A DNA stretch of 64,000 nt from Oikopleura dioica (taxonomy: Eukaryota > Animalia > Chordata), in assembly GCA_907165135.1 (NCBI GenBank), contig OU015567.1, forward strand, positions 1,550,001 through 1,614,000, in the 5' to 3' direction. Of the stretch, positions 1,076 to 43,272 are shown piece after piece. Under the pieces are notes generated by a model. The model saw nothing but the letters and a program-made list of their open reading frames with translations, had not been told where the DNA came from and made no database searches. Made by a program: the position numbers and the translations under genes. Position 1 is the stretch's first letter. Every line of letters begins with the position of its first letter.

Positions 1076-4000
1076 ATGGGTGACGAAGTCAAAATCGTGA
1101 TCCTTGGGGATCGAGGCGTCGGAAAAACAACTCTCATTCTAACTCTCGTTACTGAGGAGTTCTGTAGCAAGCCGCCAAAGACTCTCAATCGAATCGGCAT
1201 CACTAGTGAAGTTTCGAACCATTCTAGCGCTGGATTGACTTATCTCGTTGATTATTCGTAAGAAGATCATCCTAGAAGGGTTCTTGACGGATATTTCTAG
1301 GGAAGCGAATTCCGAAGAAATCTTGGAAGATGCCGATGTTGTCTGCTTGTGCCACAACGTCCTCGACATCGATTCGCTCTTTGAGTCAGCAGAAAAGTGG
1401 CTTTCGATCGTCAGACTTCAGGCGTACAAAAGTCCGCCTGTGATCATTGTAGGAACGAAGTCTGATGAAATTAAACAGTCAAGGAATGGTTTTCTTAAAA
1501 TTTTAATAATGGAAATGATATGGAATTCTCAAGTGAGGAACCAGACAAAGAAATGCTTTTAACAGTTCTTGGAACGAAAAATGCAAGGCGCTCATGTCCA
1601 GATATCCAGAAGTCGCAAGTAAGAAAAGCAACAAACTTTCGCCAAAGTACTTAGAATTCTAAGTTAGAAAATTGAATATTATTCAAAATGTGATAGAAAG
1701 TTTCTAAAAGAGACCATAAGAGTATACTGAATAGTGATAAGTCATGAATTAAATTGCTCACGAAGTTGATAAAATAAATCACTAGATTTGAATTTAAAAT
1801 ACATAGCATCGTCATAACTTATAAGTTATAACGGCTCTATATAACGTTCTTAATATCTATAGACGTGCTTTTTTTAAGGTTATGCAATTTATTTCACCCA
1901 CTTCCTCATTTTTAGACCCAGAACACCATACATATTTGGAATCAGTGGAGAAAATCTAAAAACTTGACCGTTTTAGTTTTCCGAAATTCACTTCCGGTAA
2001 CGATTCTAGAGCCGGAAGTAGGCGAAATTTTGGAGTCATGGTAAAGTGTGACCTATCAAATTGATGCGCAGATGATTCTCAGTCATCTCATCATCAACTT
2101 ATTTGAAGAAACAGTCTTAAACGCGGTTAAACTGACCGGTAAAACTATGAAAAAAGCATGATTTAATGAGAGATTTTCCAATTTTTACCGGTCGTTTACC
2201 GGCGTTTTTTGACCGCGGTTGGACTCGGTTCCGGTCATAAATGACTGGATTTGTTGTAAGCTTTAATTTGATAGGTCATATGTATGTATTTCTTATAAAT
2301 TTCGTGGACTTCCGGCTCTAGAATCGTTACCGGAAGTGAATTTCGAAAAACTAAAACGGTCAAGTTTTTAGGTTTTCTCCACTGATTCCAAATATGTATG
2401 GTGTTCTGGGTCTAAAAATGAGGAAGTGGGTGAAATAAATTGCATAACCTTAAAAAAGCACGTCATAGTAGTCTATTAGACACGAAACATAGTTCTGAAT
2501 CAGATACTGATCTTGATAGATAGAACAACTTCAGGCGCAATGGAATGCTCTTCAAAACTCAACCTCGGCGTGCTAAATGTCTTCGTCGACGCCCAGAAAT
2601 GTGCACTCTACCCACTTTGCCCAGTTTTCAATGCCCGTTCGGGTAAATTAACGCTTGAAGCTTCAAGCGCTCTTCGTCGCGTTTTCCACATTGCAGATAT
2701 TAACTACGACGGAGTTCTTGATTTTGGAGAACTTGGCGAGCTCCAGAGAAAGGCTTTCAACACGCATCTTGGAGATCAAGGTTAGTAAACTCTTTATTAA
2801 TTGTCCTGACATTCCATCTTTCCCTTGAAGGCTATGAAGATATCCGACATCTGATTCATTCTTCAATCCAAAACGGAGTCGTGAAACAAGGAATCACCAT
2901 CGAAGGCTTTTTCGCATTACAAGCAGAGCTTTGTAAAAATCTCAAACAAGAAGTTGTCTGGACGCTTCTCAAAGCGTTTGGGTACACTTTGAAATGCGGG
3001 GAAGTTCGATTGGAGCTACATCCTTTTCTGAGGTTTGGCAATCATCATTTTCATAGTTGAAAACAGTTTTAGTTCTCTGCGCTTGAACCCTGATCCAAAG
3101 AAAAACTCCCTCTCCGATTCTTCGATTGATTTCTTGAGAAACTGTTTCTCAAAAGTCGACGCTGAAAAAGAAGGAATAATTGACTCCGCAAAGATAAAGA
3201 AGATCTTCTCTGGTTGCGAGTGGATTCCTCGCGAATTCGACCTGTCTTTAGATTCAACGCCAGTTTATCTCGTCTCAGGAAGACAGGTGATAACGATGGA
3301 TAGCTGGATCGCCCGGTGGGAGCTTTTTATGCTCTTGGATTGTGAAAAATGCTTGACGACGATCATTCTTCTTGGCGTTGTTCACTCGTCTTTTGGGCTC
3401 AATGAAAAGGTTTTTTGGCGATACTGAGTGCTCTTTTCTTTATTTATTTTTCAGCTTACAACTTCTGCGGTTCAAAAAGTCGTGAAAATCGGCGCCCAAC
3501 TCCCTTCGAGACCCATCGTCGTCGCCGTCTGTGGAGATCGAATGACTGGCAAATCTTCAGTAGTCAACTGTCTCGTGAAAAATAACAAGTTCAAGCAATC
3601 AATCACTTCAAAACGAATCAACCTTGATGACCTCACAGTAAGTAAAAAACCATAAAAGCAGCTTTTGCTTGAAAATGTATTCTAAATGGATCACCATCGT
3701 GAACTGATAAAATGACCATCTCGTTCATAGGACGGATGATTACATAGGTAGCAAGGTAAAATTTAGATTTCAAATACATCGTTTAGTAAACCCAAAAATA
3801 CGTTTTAGATTACGCTAATTCTTCAAGAAGTTCCCCTCGACGAGCTCGACTCAATCTGCGCCGATGCCATTCTAGCAACTTACAGCACTAGCGCCGACTC
3901 TTCCCAGCAAACTCTTCTATCAAAACTCAAAGCACGGAAAAAACTACGAATCAACGTTCCTGAAATAATTCTATGCAAAACGCGAGCCGATTTGCGCTCT

Positions 4001-37402: not shown

Positions 37403-37923
37403 TAGGGTAAATCACTAATAATTCGCCTTTTTTCTGGGCTTAGTAAGGGGGACATATAATACATTTTTAGAAAGCCCAGGACCTGGGGATCATTTTGACT
37501 ATTGATACCAGGGGGTGATCTCGTACCCTGAGGGAATAAAGGTACCCCCGAAGTCAGAAAATCTGGCCACTTTCGGAAATTCGAATTTTCGGCCGCCCAG
37601 ACCGCCTTTTTAGAACCAGCGGCAATGCTAGAATTGTAGCTCAGGCTCTGACGGTCATTTTGTGGGGTCGAAAAATACTGATTACCCCCCCTTCCTGAGG
37701 CGCTAGAGACCCCCGAAGTTGGGGGTCTGGGCGGCCGAAAATTCGAATTTCCGAAAGTGGCCAAATTTTCTGACTTCGGAGGTACCTTTATGCCCTCAGG
37801 GTACGAGATCACCCCCTGGTATCAATAGTCAAAATGATCCCCAGGTCCTAGGCTTTCTAAAAATGTATTATATGTCCCCCTTACTAAGCCCAGAAAATGG
37901 CGATTTATTTGTGATTTACCCTA
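37403..37923. mobile_element. hAT-type MITE (521 bp), related to 14672-20504
   Basis: TIR TAGGGTAAATCAC...; 8-bp TSD CCGATTGT (37395-37402 and 37924-37931); shares GGGGATCATTTTGACTATTGATA and GGGGTGATCTCGTACCCTGAGGG blocks with the 14672 element. Confidence 0.93.
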
Positions 37924-38694: not shown

Positions 38695-40980
38695 ATGGAA
38701 TCTGAATATATGATATCAGATCACCCAAAAGAGCTCGACAGGGCGACGATTCATAAATGGCTAGAGAAAATTTTACCTAAATTAAAGCGAACAACGACGA
38801 GAACATCTCAATGCAGACTCATCTCGAGCTTTGAAAGAATCAAGATTGACTGGAAAACTGCTGAACAAGATTGGAGATACTGCGAGGCGAGAAAATCTGA
38901 GGGGGGATGGACGAGTGGGATTGTTCTTGACGATGAAAAGGAATCGTTTGACATGCCATTTGAATTGAATGATTTGCAGAGGGAAATTTTAGCAGATGAT
39001 CCTTCTCTTTTTAACATAATAATTGATCGATGGAAAATCAAAGAAGAAAATGGAAAATGGATTCTGGATGATCTTCTTGAACAAAAAAAGCTTTCTGAAG
39101 GAGGAGAAGCGCTGATTTTTCAAGAAAAATTCGAGAATTTAGAGACTGCAGTTAGAGTTCAAGCCTTTGAACCTTTTCTCTTCACAGAATGCTTCAAAAA
39201 CGAATCGCTTACTTGGGAAATTCATCTCGCAGAAGACTTCGAAAAAGCAGAAGAAGGAGATGAGGGGGAAATTATCCCATTTCATGAAAACATTGTTCGA
39301 CATCATGTCAACGTGGAGTTTTACCATAAATCAGACTCTGATAAGACTGATTGTCTAGGTTGGCTTACAATTATGGAAAAATGTGATGCCGATCTTCGAA
39401 AATTTTTGCGGGAAGAAAGTTTGGATCTTGCAGAAAGAAAATCAATTGCTCATGGCATTCTCAGCGGGATCGAATATTTATCTGGAATTAACATAAGACA
39501 TTGGGATTTGAAGCCTGATAATATTTTACTTTTGAATGGAGTCCCGAAAATTTGCGGTTTCGGACTCGCGTCTGCAGGGAGATTAGGGACAGAAGGAACA
39601 ACAGGAGGAGAAAACTGCCTAGGTTTTGAAAAAATGGGGTACTCTCGTAGGGGAGAAAGATTTCATAATAATGCTCGTGTCTGTAAGTTTCGCCGTAGTT
39701 TCAGATTGCTTTAACTTCTTGTTAGTGGCTGGAACGCCGGGGTTTGCAATTCTTCAACAATTCTGCGTTTCGAGTGAGTATATTGTTGGGATGAACATTT
39801 TTTACTTTCTTTTCTGTGATTGGGTGTCATCATGGACACTTCTTTACAGGCCAATAACTTCTCAAACTGAGTTGGATATTGACGAAGAATTGAAGGTTTT
39901 AATTATTATTCAACGAATTGATTGAAATTTTTCTTTTAAGAAATGTAATGCCCTGTCTTTGAAGCAACTCATGACAACTACTGGCGACATTTCGAAAATT
40001 TTGAGAATATTACGGGAATAATTACCCTGGCCGACAATGAAAAATTCTATGATTTATACATGGACGAGGAAAATCAAAGCTACTATGACCTGTGGATTGA
40101 CGACGAAAATTTAACGACATCTTATCAGTTGTCCTCCATCAAGCAAAGAATGACCAGAAGTGTCAAATTTGAAATGGAAAACTTGGAAGAATACATTCTC
40201 GATCAAAAAATCAGCCAGTTGTGTGTTCCGATTTCGGTTACAACTCTCCTTCGATATGCAATGCGCAGTGACCTTGATTATTTTCCTGAGGGCAACAAAT
40301 ATACTTTTGAGATGATACTCACAACTCTGACAATGATTGTTTATCCAAGAAGCTTGGCTGGACTCAATTTGAATCCGAGAAAAAAGGAAGTCGATAGCCA
40401 ATTTTCTTCAGAAATTGGTCTTTTGCTTGATCGGCTTTGCCATAAAACTTATTTCATGAAGTCAGGTTGGGAAATCATAAAACAAATTGGTGATGACAAA
40501 GTTTTTCAAAAGCGTCCAATAGATTGCAAGTGGACTTTTGGTAATTAGCTAAATTTTCCGATGACATAATAAGAATAAGTTGAGCTGCATGAAAACTTCG
40601 AATTCAGCAGACCTTTGTCTGTAACAGCGGTCATCTTATTCGACACACAGCCGAAAATGCACCAAATGACCATTGATCGAGTTGAAAATGGCGAATACGT
40701 TCTTCAAAACACTGAATTCAAGTATTCAGTAGAAGAGGACGCATACGATACTCCAGTTGTGAGAATCGATATGAAAAAGCCTTACTATCATGGAGAAGGG
40801 AATTTTGTGGAAAATTTGATTTACCAAACTGGTCAGAATGTTCATGACCTCAATGGAATCAAGCGAAAGTATGTTAATGAAATGGCCGGAAACATGGACT
40901 TAAGAACTTGGTATCTACTTCCGACTGGTTTTACCATTCAACTCAGCGATCGAGATTTTATTATTGCAGATTTAGATTGA
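38695..40980 (+). CDS. Protein kinase-like domain plus papain-like cysteine peptidase-like domain; one apparent frameshift at ~40018
   Basis: Kinase motifs LSEGGEA, TAVRV, IRHWDLKPDNILL, ICGFGL, LAGTPGFA; downstream ILDQKISQLCVPIS and MHQMTIDRVENGEYVLQNT. The spliced frame stops at TAA 40019-40021 and continues in the -1 frame. Confidence 0.75.
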
Positions 40981-41115: not shown

Positions 41116-43272
41116 TTACAGAAGGATCTGGTTCTGGAGGCCGAGCTTCATTCCATGAAGTTCTTTTCCAGGGAGAATGATCGCATTTCGAATGATGGTT
41201 TCGTCGGGCGTAATTGTATCTCGACCAAGAATTGTGATGGCTAGAAAAGTGGATAGAATTCGTTGTAAGAGGGAATACTACTTGGGAGAAGTTTTCCATT
41301 GTCATCGAAAAGATAGAAATTGTCAGTTGTGGCGTGAGGTCGATCGGGGTGAAGTTGCGTCGGGGTCCCTTCGACTCGGGTCCACGAGCCAACGGTGCTC
41401 TGCCATCCAACGATACTTAGAGAACGCTCGAGTGGATGCTATGTTTTCTAAAAATACCTGTTTAAAATGCAGGCGTGCTTTTTGATAATCGTTCCGTCCA
41501 AAATGATCGAGTTCTTTACTCGAGCACCCTCTTCAATCACGACGTTGGAGCCAATGGAGACATGAGGGCCGAGTTTTGCAGAGGGATGGACTTTTGCGCT
41601 AGGGTGGATGTAGACGTTTCCTTCGCAGTTGGAGTCGGTTGAGAGGCGGTTGGGGTGGTATTTTTTGTACATCTCCATCATTATTCTTAATAGAATATTT
41701 TTATCAATACTCAAAATCTTAGAGTCTACGTAGATGACATCCTGATTTACTCTACTTTCATATTTTCAAATAAAAAAATTCCTCAAAAACGGATGTCTTA
41801 ATTTTCTGAGGCCAGTTATGGTTTTAAGTGTTTCTCTCCGAATCCTACCTTGATGCATAAACAGCTGATCCAGCAGACTTGATCGACATCCAAAAGGCTT
41901 CATTCATGAAAGCAAAAACTTTTCCTTGCCCGGCTTGTTGGCTCAAAATATCCGACTCAAGCGAGATCGAGTCGTTTCCTTAAAAAATATGTTTTTGATT
42001 ACAACTTTCACGGGCGCCTACCAGTTCCAACTCGTTCGGCGAAAATCTTTGAGATGTCGTCAAAGACTTCGGTGGAGAGAAGATAGACTCCGCCGTTGAT
42101 GTGATTGGACACAAAGCTTGATGGTTTTTCGATGTAATGAACGACCTCGTTTGTCTGAGAGTTGACGCCCATGCATCCGTAGTTCATACTCTGCTCGTTT
42201 TCCACCTTGAAAGCAGTTTTAATTACAGGTGTTTTTGAAGTAACTGACCTGGACGCCCATAACAAGGTATTTCATCCACTTTTCTCTGAATGCGATCATG
42301 TTGGAAAGGACCCCGCGGAGGTCGCAGAAGATGTCGCAGAAGATCAAAAAGAAGGCTTCGGTGTTGGAGGTCAGGATCAGATCTCGGAAGAGGTAGATAC
42401 TTCCTGCTGTTCCGAGGAGCGAGTATTCCTTGAATTACAGTAAGGTTTTGTTTAAAAAAATATTTTCTATTGAAATAGATCTTGGTTCAAGAAACTGTGT
42501 ATAAACCTGATTCAGGCAATTTTAATAACTAAACAGGTTTTTCTCGATATATTCTAGATATCGAACTGCAAATTCAAAAGCAAAGGCAATAAAATAATAT
42601 ATTTTTCTAGCAACTCAAATTTATAATATTGATTGATAATATTGAATTATAAAATGAACGAAAACTAGTGCAAAATTTACCAATGTCGGAATAAGAAAAG
42701 ATTTATCACAGACTACTCAAGTCAAAAAAAGAACTTTAACAACCTGAGGTCAGGTAACCTGACTCAGATTTCAGTATCTACATATGGATTTGCGATTGAA
42801 TAGTACCTGAAGATATCTGATATTGAGTTTGTATTCATCCTTCATTTCTCGAATAAATCGATTGAGTTGCTCGGTCGGTTGAAAGTATCCGATGAGGATG
42901 ATCTCCTTGATAGTGTCAATCGAGGCACAGCTCTCAATATGATGCTGGACAAGCGGAAGGCCAGCAATGGGGAAGAGCGGCTTTGGAATATCCAGCGAAA
43001 GTGGTCGGAATCGAGTTCCCTGAAAAGAGCGATAACGAACTGATTAACCTTGGCATTTAAAATTGATAAATAAACTCGAAACACCATGTTTTTCTTAGAG
43101 CCAAAACTAAGTATAGCAATCAAGAAATAATTGATTATTTATTGAGTATTTGACTGAAAGACAAAAACAATTGCTGTTTACAAATAAAAGATGACAAAAA
43201 TTAAGATTTATCAATCAGAAACAAGCTTACCTTTCCAGGGCCTCCGACCAAAATGACAGCTTTGCTCACCAT
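41116..43272 (-). CDS. GMPPA: Mannose-1-phosphate guanylyltransferase regulatory subunit alpha
   Basis: [14 protein letters not shown]|[20 protein letters not shown]; [22 protein letters not shown]; NYGC...[19 protein letters not shown]; hexapeptide [24 protein letters not shown]; end [19 protein letters not shown]...ITILG...NQILL*. Confidence 0.95.

Follow-up and report, generated by a model that had tools for sequence, protein, structure and literature searches.

A kinase-like domain joined to a C-domain of predicted papain fold in a large gene family of Oikopleura dioica

Both protein kinases and papain-fold proteases are well known, and papain, cathepsin B and the C39 peptidases have in common the active-site spacing Gln-x5-Cys and His-x15-Asn. 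The plant EDR1/CTR1-type Raf-like kinases carry an EDR1 domain (PF14381) and a kinase domain, and thereby combine a papain-like fold with a kinase in one eukaryotic protein (PMC10318531). Their papain-like part belongs to the transglutaminase-like branch and lies N-terminal to the kinase (PMC10318531). The literature searches found these proteins as the only described fusion of a papain-like fold and a protein kinase in eukaryotes. The subject of this report is a gene at positions 38695-40980 (+ strand) of a 64,000-nucleotide stretch of Oikopleura dioica DNA, here called the window (contig OU015567.1, positions 1,550,001 to 1,614,000 of the forward strand), and the gene family to which it belongs. 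The genome is that of O. dioica OKI2018_I69 (Okinawa assembly), with 64.3 Mb in 19 contigs. The gene encodes a kinase-like domain followed by a domain of about 290 residues, the C-domain. The novelty lies in the combination and in a new clan CA sequence family. A sequence-only reading of the window had found the architecture unrecognisable among animal proteins, and as far as the literature searches reach it is indeed undescribed in animals, with no paper found on this Oikopleura kinase-protease family.

The family is best explained, with a modest preference over all other readings together, as one in which an N-terminal region and a divergent, probably inactive kinase are followed by a papain-fold C-domain that works as an active, kinase-tethered thiol hydrolase. 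The C-domain would be an intracellular protease or isopeptidase of papain or C39 type. Being permanently tethered to it in a compact protein, the kinase-like domain would serve to position, gate or target this hydrolase. Behind this explanation stand the domain architecture, the fold prediction, four conserved residues and the sign of purifying selection.

In a six-frame search of the genome, the first half of the C-domain has at least 132 matches. The second half has 114, and each of these follows a first-half match on the same strand at a distance of a few hundred bases. The proposed lineage expansion is thus borne out; for a genome of 64 Mb, this is a very large family. The matches lie on contigs C1, C2, C4 and C5 and on two small contigs, and many of them are clustered. 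Kinase exons are found upstream of the C-domain, ordered and on one strand, in 35 of the 36 paralogous loci that were fetched. Three loci (L013, L014 and L015) have a single open reading frame (ORF) of 574-669 codons, which starts at the N-terminus, spans the kinase and extends into the C-domain beyond the Cys motif. About 30 annotated proteins of the Norwegian O. dioica genome, many of them 690-715 residues long, hold both domains. Database names for family proteins are only "protein kinase domain-containing" or "uncharacterized", and the closest database relatives of the window copy are O. dioica proteins. The order in the loci, the shared ORFs and the annotated proteins make the fusion, as judged from the gene sequences, a firm property of the family. 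The paralogue search by tblastn, which had been suggested as a check on whether the fusion is conserved, thus places kinase and C-domain in one protein.

A mobile-element cause of the copy number was rejected. Similarity between paralogous loci stops at the gene borders, and the copies are therefore gene duplicates and not mobile-element cargo. Two pairs are identical or near-identical, L020/L021 (C5:4609508 and C5:4651616, 42 kb apart) and L014/L015 (C4:3231078 and C4:3285894, 55 kb apart), and they point to recent segmental duplication. Repeats of 55-140 nucleotides, 76-94% identical and in both orientations, occur inside the kinase part of L032 (1300-2210) and L036 (1390-2870), which suggests small repeat insertions in introns.

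No relative of the C-domain was found in Pfam, where the window exons, paralogues L002 and L013, annotated protein P0001 and distant homologues gave only noise. With the same queries PF00112 (Peptidase C1) had no match at E up to 10. Matches to PF03412 and PF13529 (C39 and C39_2) in Pfam were also absent, as was any match to PF14381 (EDR1). Single-sequence and profile searches for PDB sequence relatives of the C-domain likewise returned only noise, and the leads from a language-model look-alike search were no more than weak (Peptidase_C1/C39_2 at 0.89).

The sequence chosen for modelling is a natural paralogue (L002:1042-1890:-) whose 42-nucleotide intron is in frame and stop-free, and which comprises the whole domain plus 14 extra residues. 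It is 57% identical to the window copy in the first half and 45% in the second. With a 58-row alignment (A3), checked motif by motif, as input, AlphaFold2 gives a model with a predicted local distance difference test score (pLDDT) of 81 and a predicted template modelling score (pTM) of 0.82. The model is of the alpha plus beta type, and the putative nucleophile Cys stands where the central helix begins, as in clan CA. Cys32 opens helix 32-48, His181 lies in strand 179-189, and Asn197 directly follows hairpin strand 192-196.

The exhaustive VIA-align search with this model gives 60 chains at Z >=5, and all 50 chains listed are clan CA thiol peptidases. Papain-family enzymes have Z 9.6-8, where values near 8 can reflect a common arrangement, with 150-175 residues aligned at a root-mean-square deviation (rmsd) of 3.4-4.7. 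The C39 domains of PCAT1 and ComA have Z 8.8-8.3 and rmsd 3.0-3.6. ATG4A reaches Z 8.8, and the lower rows contain staphopain, streptopain, IdeS, UfSP and ZUFSP. A true shared fold is favoured because the match list is uniform and residues 24-277 are covered. Structural matches in the ESM Atlas are to the C10 and C39 families, with C39 template modelling scores by target of 0.6-0.68. The VIA-align alignments begin at model residues 24-26. With gaps assumed absent, their ranges would put Gln26/Cys32 on Gln29/Cys35 of Der f 1, on Gln23/Cys29 of cathepsin B and on Gln11/Cys17 of ComA, and Cys32 on Cys21 of PCAT1. The prediction of a papain (clan CA) fold for the C-domain is thus one of good confidence; in it Gln, Cys, His and Asn follow the canonical order and occupy the canonical places in the secondary structure. 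The papain-like character suggested from the letters of the window is in this way recovered by AlphaFold2, VIA-align and the ESM Atlas on the paralogue model. By that model the C-domain would form a new sequence family of the papain fold, one that lies in no Pfam family.

Conservation was counted in the 36 fetched paralogues and the window copy, and also in database proteins. The Gln is present in 37/37 copies, the Cys in 35/37, the His in 36/36 and the Asn in 36/37, so the conservation expected among paralogues is found and the motifs did not arise by chance. In the wider alignment Cys and His occur in nearly all rows, and the third residue is mostly Asn, is Asp in one O. dioica subfamily (IIKDS), and is lost in a few. 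Distant homologues read HAVxL...KNS, which is closer still to the papain motif. The catalytic order Gln, Cys, His, Asn/Asp is present in the window and conserved. Other invariant positions of the C-domain are YPRS..G.N.NP, SGW and WYL.P. Among closer paralogues the ratio of nonsynonymous to synonymous substitution rates (dN/dS) in the first C-domain exon is 0.11-0.38 at dS 0.2-1.4, and the copies are therefore maintained by purifying selection. At C-domain alignment positions 49-65 and 78, the linker FCLDDPNLTKS...LKQ before the protease part is strongly conserved and modelled as disordered. An N-L-T lies within it, and in most paralogues a second one immediately precedes the Gln. As speculation, the linker could be a candidate site for self-cleavage, phosphorylation, docking or glycosylation.

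The kinase half begins with a recognisable profile match. Exon 1 of the window copy scores above the gathering score of the Pfam protein kinase profile (PF00069; E 1.8e-12, 47.7 bits, cut-off 31.7) over residues 225-295, from hinge to DFG only. The glycine-rich loop of the family has the consensus SxGGEA. The beta3 strand reads AVR in about 90% of copies, the window copy included, with Arg at the Lys position, and about 90% or more of the copies retain HxDxKPxN and DFG. The DFG Asp is found in 33 of 34 copies, and GFG is peculiar to the window copy. The three kinase features noted in the window (HxDLKPxN, Arg at beta3 and GFG for DFG) are all present in exon 1, so that two of the residues of an active kinase are replaced and HWDLKPDN is kept. 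The beta3 Lys-to-Arg change is a classic kinase-dead change. Because Arg replaces the ATP-anchoring Lys, the kinase domain of the O. dioica family is probably a pseudokinase or a very weak kinase. Sequence matches to solved kinases are weak and unspecific (CDK9, p38-gamma, DAPK1 and TTK, E 1e-4 to 1e-5, about 100 residues). The full-length model of P0170 (707 residues) has pLDDT 79 and pTM 0.81, and the latter suggests a fixed domain arrangement. It matches kinases of many groups, including IRE1, IRAK4, GSK3 and CDK (E about 1e-6, probability 1.0).

The first 125 or so residues form a helix-and-sheet (alpha/beta) region, for which no family match was found. The N-terminus MESEYMISDHPKELD of the window copy is hydrophilic, as judged by eye, and a cytosolic location is plausible for this copy. 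Some members (L002:2671-3309:-, and P0170, P0171 and P0176, residues 1-25) start with a hydrophobic stretch of 14-17 residues (MLEFSILAILATCIAGM..., MLEEIFFSAFFCVWLLKWLF...). This stretch is modelled as a low-confidence helix, is absent from the window copy and most Okinawa paralogues, and could be a signal peptide or membrane anchor.

A profile search of 1.84 billion representative proteins gives 201 hits at E <=0.001. Ten hits were looked up; the five with a cluster source name are all O. dioica, and the others come from marine metagenome assemblies. The family has so far been seen only in Oikopleura and in marine contigs. The most distant homologues (P0124, P0141 and P0150) have 17-24% identity, and their contigs carry a Pkinase ORF that directly precedes the C-domain ORF in the same orientation. 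The kinase of the distant homologues has the family-specific motif F(C/S)xWxxxWxxL(Y/F)xPI, common to the O. dioica proteins. The same domain order in these homologues indicates that the architecture is older than the O. dioica expansion. A distant homologue retains the beta3 Lys (LRAVKIV), and the Lys-to-Arg change is therefore derived. One metagenome contig (L038, ERZ508537 NODE_12221) contains a 686-codon ORF at 1395-3455 that consists of a C-domain, a kinase C-lobe and a second C-domain, with a Pkinase ORF further upstream. It is either a tandem pair read through or a protein of repeated modules, and its first C-domain lacks the His and Asn.

The window copy consists of four coding pieces separated by very short GT..AG introns, as read from the sequence (Table 1). 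Exon 2 is matched by tblastn in 32 of the 36 paralogues, always between exon 1 and the C-domain. The Q-x5-C and H-x15-N motifs reported earlier stand where they were placed, after the kinase part and in the following exon. The start of the last exon had been put at 40615 and is corrected to 40580, since annotated relatives read VMLNENFVFSRPLSVTG across the junction. Last-intron models 40530-40607 and 40541-40627 were dropped in favour of 40541-40579 on the basis of the alignment with annotated proteins.

Table 1. Features of the window copy (positions in the 64,000-nucleotide window)
Feature	Position	Strand	Description
Exon 1	38695..39682	+	ORF; 329 residues; N-terminal region of about 125 residues, then kinase N-lobe to activation segment
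Gly-rich loop SEGGEA	39094-39111	+	Exon 1
beta3 AVRVQ	39148-39162	+	Exon 1; Arg at beta3 Lys position
Catalytic loop RHWDLKPDN	39496-39522	+	Exon 1
GFG replacing DFG	39556-39564	+	Exon 1
Intron 1	39683..39725	+	43 nucleotides; GTAAGT..TTGTTAG; phase 1; removal restores family motif L-AGTPGF (paralogue consensus)
Exon 2	39726..39895	+	Kinase C-lobe, ends DIDEELK; tblastn and paralogue consensus
GTPGF (of AGTPGF)	39731-39745	+	Exon 2, which also has the family-specific FCDW..W.LLY.P
Intron 2, family-typical	39896..39940	+	45 nucleotides; GTTTTA..TTTTAAG; gives ELK|KCNALS, then stop 40019-40021
Intron 2, alternative	39896..40005	+	110 nucleotides; GT..TTTTGAG; keeps kinase and C-domain in one frame (ELK|NITGIITL)
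C-domain first-half open frame	39949..40540	+	ORF list, genome matches, conservation, fold
Linker motif DDENLTTS	40099-40122	+	C-domain first half
DQKISQLC (Q-x5-C)	40201-40224	+	Putative oxyanion Gln 40204-06; putative nucleophile Cys 40222-24
YPRSLAGLNLNP	40342-40377	+	C-domain first half
SGW	40462-40470	+	C-domain first half
Intron 3	40541..40579	+	39 nucleotides; GTAATT..GAATAAG; phase 1; restores V-ELHENFEFSRPLSVT, matching VMLNENFVFSRPLSVTG of annotated proteins P0001 and P0002
Last exon	40580..40980	+	Predicted beta-sheet half of C-domain; begins V-ELHENFEFSRPLSVTA; stop codon 40978-80
HQMTIDRVENGEYVLQN (H-x15-N)	40660-40710	+	Last exon; His 40660-62, Asn 40708-10
WYLLP	40909-40923	+	Last exon

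About 800 nucleotides upstream of the gene is an inverted repeat with arms at 37430-37606 and 37721-37897 (177 nucleotides, 97% complementary, spacer 114 nucleotides). Its ORFs on both strands encode the same peptide, and it looks like a hairpin-forming element similar to a miniature inverted-repeat transposable element. Minus-strand exons at 41448-42265 resemble a hexapeptide-repeat nucleotidyl-transferase, by eye probably GDP-mannose pyrophosphorylase. This gene is convergent and ends about 470 nucleotides past the stop of the kinase-protease gene.

The join between kinase and C-domain is where the window copy departs from its relatives. The exon start ELK|KCNALS, given by acceptor 39940, resembles those of relatives (IQKCN in P0001, QRCNADL in L002 and KSCNAL in L005). 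Its frame reads KCNALSLKQLMTTTGDISKILRILRE and then meets the stop at 40019-40021. The homologous continuation (THDNYW..., the ITxIISL motif, DDENLTTS and the protease) sits in another frame that is open only from 39949. The window copy appears frame-shifted relative to the family within about 39950-39966. All G-started donors and AG acceptors were enumerated by script, and the joins were tested for stops. The 110-nucleotide intron is the in-frame GT..AG join that uses the exon-2 donor. The few other in-frame GT joins start inside exon 2 and would remove kinase residues. In-frame joins with non-GT donors are also present, for example GA 39924..39964, and non-canonical introns are common in O. 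dioica. A fused product would require the 110-nucleotide intron (acceptor 40005) or a non-GT donor; without either, a truncated kinase-only protein is predicted. The chance that the window copy still yields a fused protein is put at roughly one half.

The alternative, that this copy no longer makes the fusion and is a young pseudogene or a split gene, falls slightly short of an even balance. It is about the copy alone and can hold alongside the preferred explanation of the family. On this reading acceptor 39940 leads to a kinase-only protein ending at 40019-40021, and the C-domain is untranslated or separately started at ATG 40060. The good fit of ELK|KCNALS to the exon starts of P0001, L002 and L005, followed by the shift of frame before THDNYW, favours such a loss. 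So does GFG, which replaces DFG in the window copy only. Contigs of the likely source DNA run, which is not independent of the assembly, equal the assembly over the whole stretch, and an assembly error is therefore unlikely. A second DNA sample (X3) differs from the window by single-base deletions only, read as long-read errors, and gives no evidence at the frame-shift site. On the other side, the GT..AG intron 39896-40005 uses the same donor and keeps the frame, and the exon then starts at the conserved ITxIISL motif. The exon structure of the linker differs among paralogues, the downstream frames of the window copy are all open, and of the 125 positions that are >=90% conserved in the family only 7 are changed in this copy, within the range of the other copies (0-8.8%).

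No RNA read lies fully on the window copy in two oligo-dT runs (X9 and X10), which fits a loss; the runs may derive from another O. dioica lineage or life stage and allow no inference on this copy. In each run about 100 reads show a match, confined to the HQMT..QN stretch (window 40675-40761). Their flanks are those of a different copy (...FFHQMTLDR...), and the reads therefore come from a paralogue or from the orthologue of another lineage. At least one family member or orthologue is well represented in RNA runs labelled O. dioica.

Several points weigh against the family-level explanation of an active, kinase-tethered thiol hydrolase. The C-domain has, in the sequence searches made, no link to a known peptidase family, Foldseek finds no PDB match to the L002 model below E 0.08 (its weak rows are rich in clan CA), and a Z of about 9 is moderate. 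The placement of Cys, His and Asn is read from secondary structure and alignment ranges, and their contact in three dimensions is putative. The near-identical twins L014 and L015 have Ser for Cys, with Phe in place of the Pro or Ile after it (LSVPFS). Because invariance extends to many further positions of the domain, that of the four residues agrees with catalysis and does not prove it. Transferases, deamidases and inactive domains are likewise found among proteins of the clan CA fold. The frame problem of the window copy and the lack of RNA reads on it in the two runs belong to the same side.

A papain fold with another chemistry, such as acyl or amino-acyl transfer, transglutamination or deamidation, as in NAT, LRAT/NlpC-P60, transglutaminase or Cif-like enzymes, is unlikely here. 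Such non-protease enzymes do share the papain fold (PMC10318531). Among the weak Foldseek rows are phytochelatin synthase, Gsp amidase and toxin domains. What speaks for proteolysis is that true peptidases of families C1, C39, C54, C47 and C10 rank highest among the structural matches and outnumber all others. The spacing of the four residues, compared through the VIA-align alignment ranges, is likewise that of papain, cathepsin B and C39. The idea that the C-domain is an inert partner-binding module, a pseudo-protease beside a pseudokinase, is improbable: the kinase half already appears inactive, and the nucleophile or another catalytic residue is lost in some copies (Ser in L014, L015 and P0007, Met in P0065, no His in the first domain of P0150), but nearly all copies, which span 25-60% identity and include distant metagenome homologues, retain Cys and His, and the C-domain is under purifying selection.

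A part in conflict or recognition, for instance in immunity, reproduction or selfish elements, would agree with the size, clustering and divergence of the family. The sequence-only reading had suggested a (pseudo)kinase sensor or switch that controls a protease or deubiquitinase-like effector, possibly in immunity or cell death; each of these roles would be hypothetical. A bolder proposal, which is doubtful at present, is that the more than 130 genes form an intracellular surveillance or cell-death system, in which the kinase-like module senses a ligand or modification and releases or aims the tethered protease. By analogy, its logic could be comparable to that of NLR-caspase or RIPK-type switches, with the DDPNLTKS linker as a possible self-cleavage or phospho-switch site. 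O. dioica has lost much of the standard innate immune toolkit, and more than 130 genes are presumably close to 1% of its gene count. O. dioica is a major marine grazer and a developmental model, and the family likely matters for its biology, because the family is large and under purifying selection, and because a member or orthologue is found in RNA runs. For protease and pseudokinase research it offers more than 100 natural variants of one regulatory design, including Cys-to-Ser and DFG-to-GFG changes.

The Oikopleura family differs from the plant EDR1/CTR1 proteins in several respects. The domain order is reversed, the organism is an animal and not a plant, and the PF14381 match is absent. 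The plant kinase is also an active mitogen-activated protein kinase kinase kinase. ATG4, UfSP1/2 and ZUFSP are cytosolic clan CA enzymes without propeptides, and match the model at Z 8.8 (ATG4A), 6.7-5.8 (UfSP) and 6.2-5.7 (ZUFSP). The C-domain has neither sequence similarity to them nor an identified ubiquitin-binding element, and the Z values of UfSP and ZUFSP are below those of C1 and C39.

The papain family (MEROPS C1: papain, cathepsins B and L, Der p 1) gives the best structural matches, with the same residue order and a two-lobed alpha plus beta layout. It shares with the C-domain the Gln-x5-Cys at a helix start and the His-x15-Asn on a beta-hairpin. The C-domain lacks sequence similarity to this family (no PF00112 and no PDB sequence match), and the window copy has no visible signal peptide, I29 propeptide or disulfide pattern. 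Extra C-terminal strands, a helix and the kinase fusion are further differences. The C39 peptidase domains (PCAT1 and ComA) and C39-like proteins are also close structural matches, with the same plan of Gln-x5-Cys and His-x(about 15)-Asp/Asn. In contrast to C39, the C-domain has no PF03412 or PF13529 match, is about twice the size, and is eukaryotic. It is tethered to a kinase-like domain in the same protein and not to an ABC transporter or exporter, and has no known double-glycine substrate. The likeness to C39 would be that of a cytoplasmic domain without propeptide that is tethered to another machine. Judged by membership tests and by the structural model, the C-domain belongs to neither C1 nor C39 by sequence, and is like both by its predicted fold.

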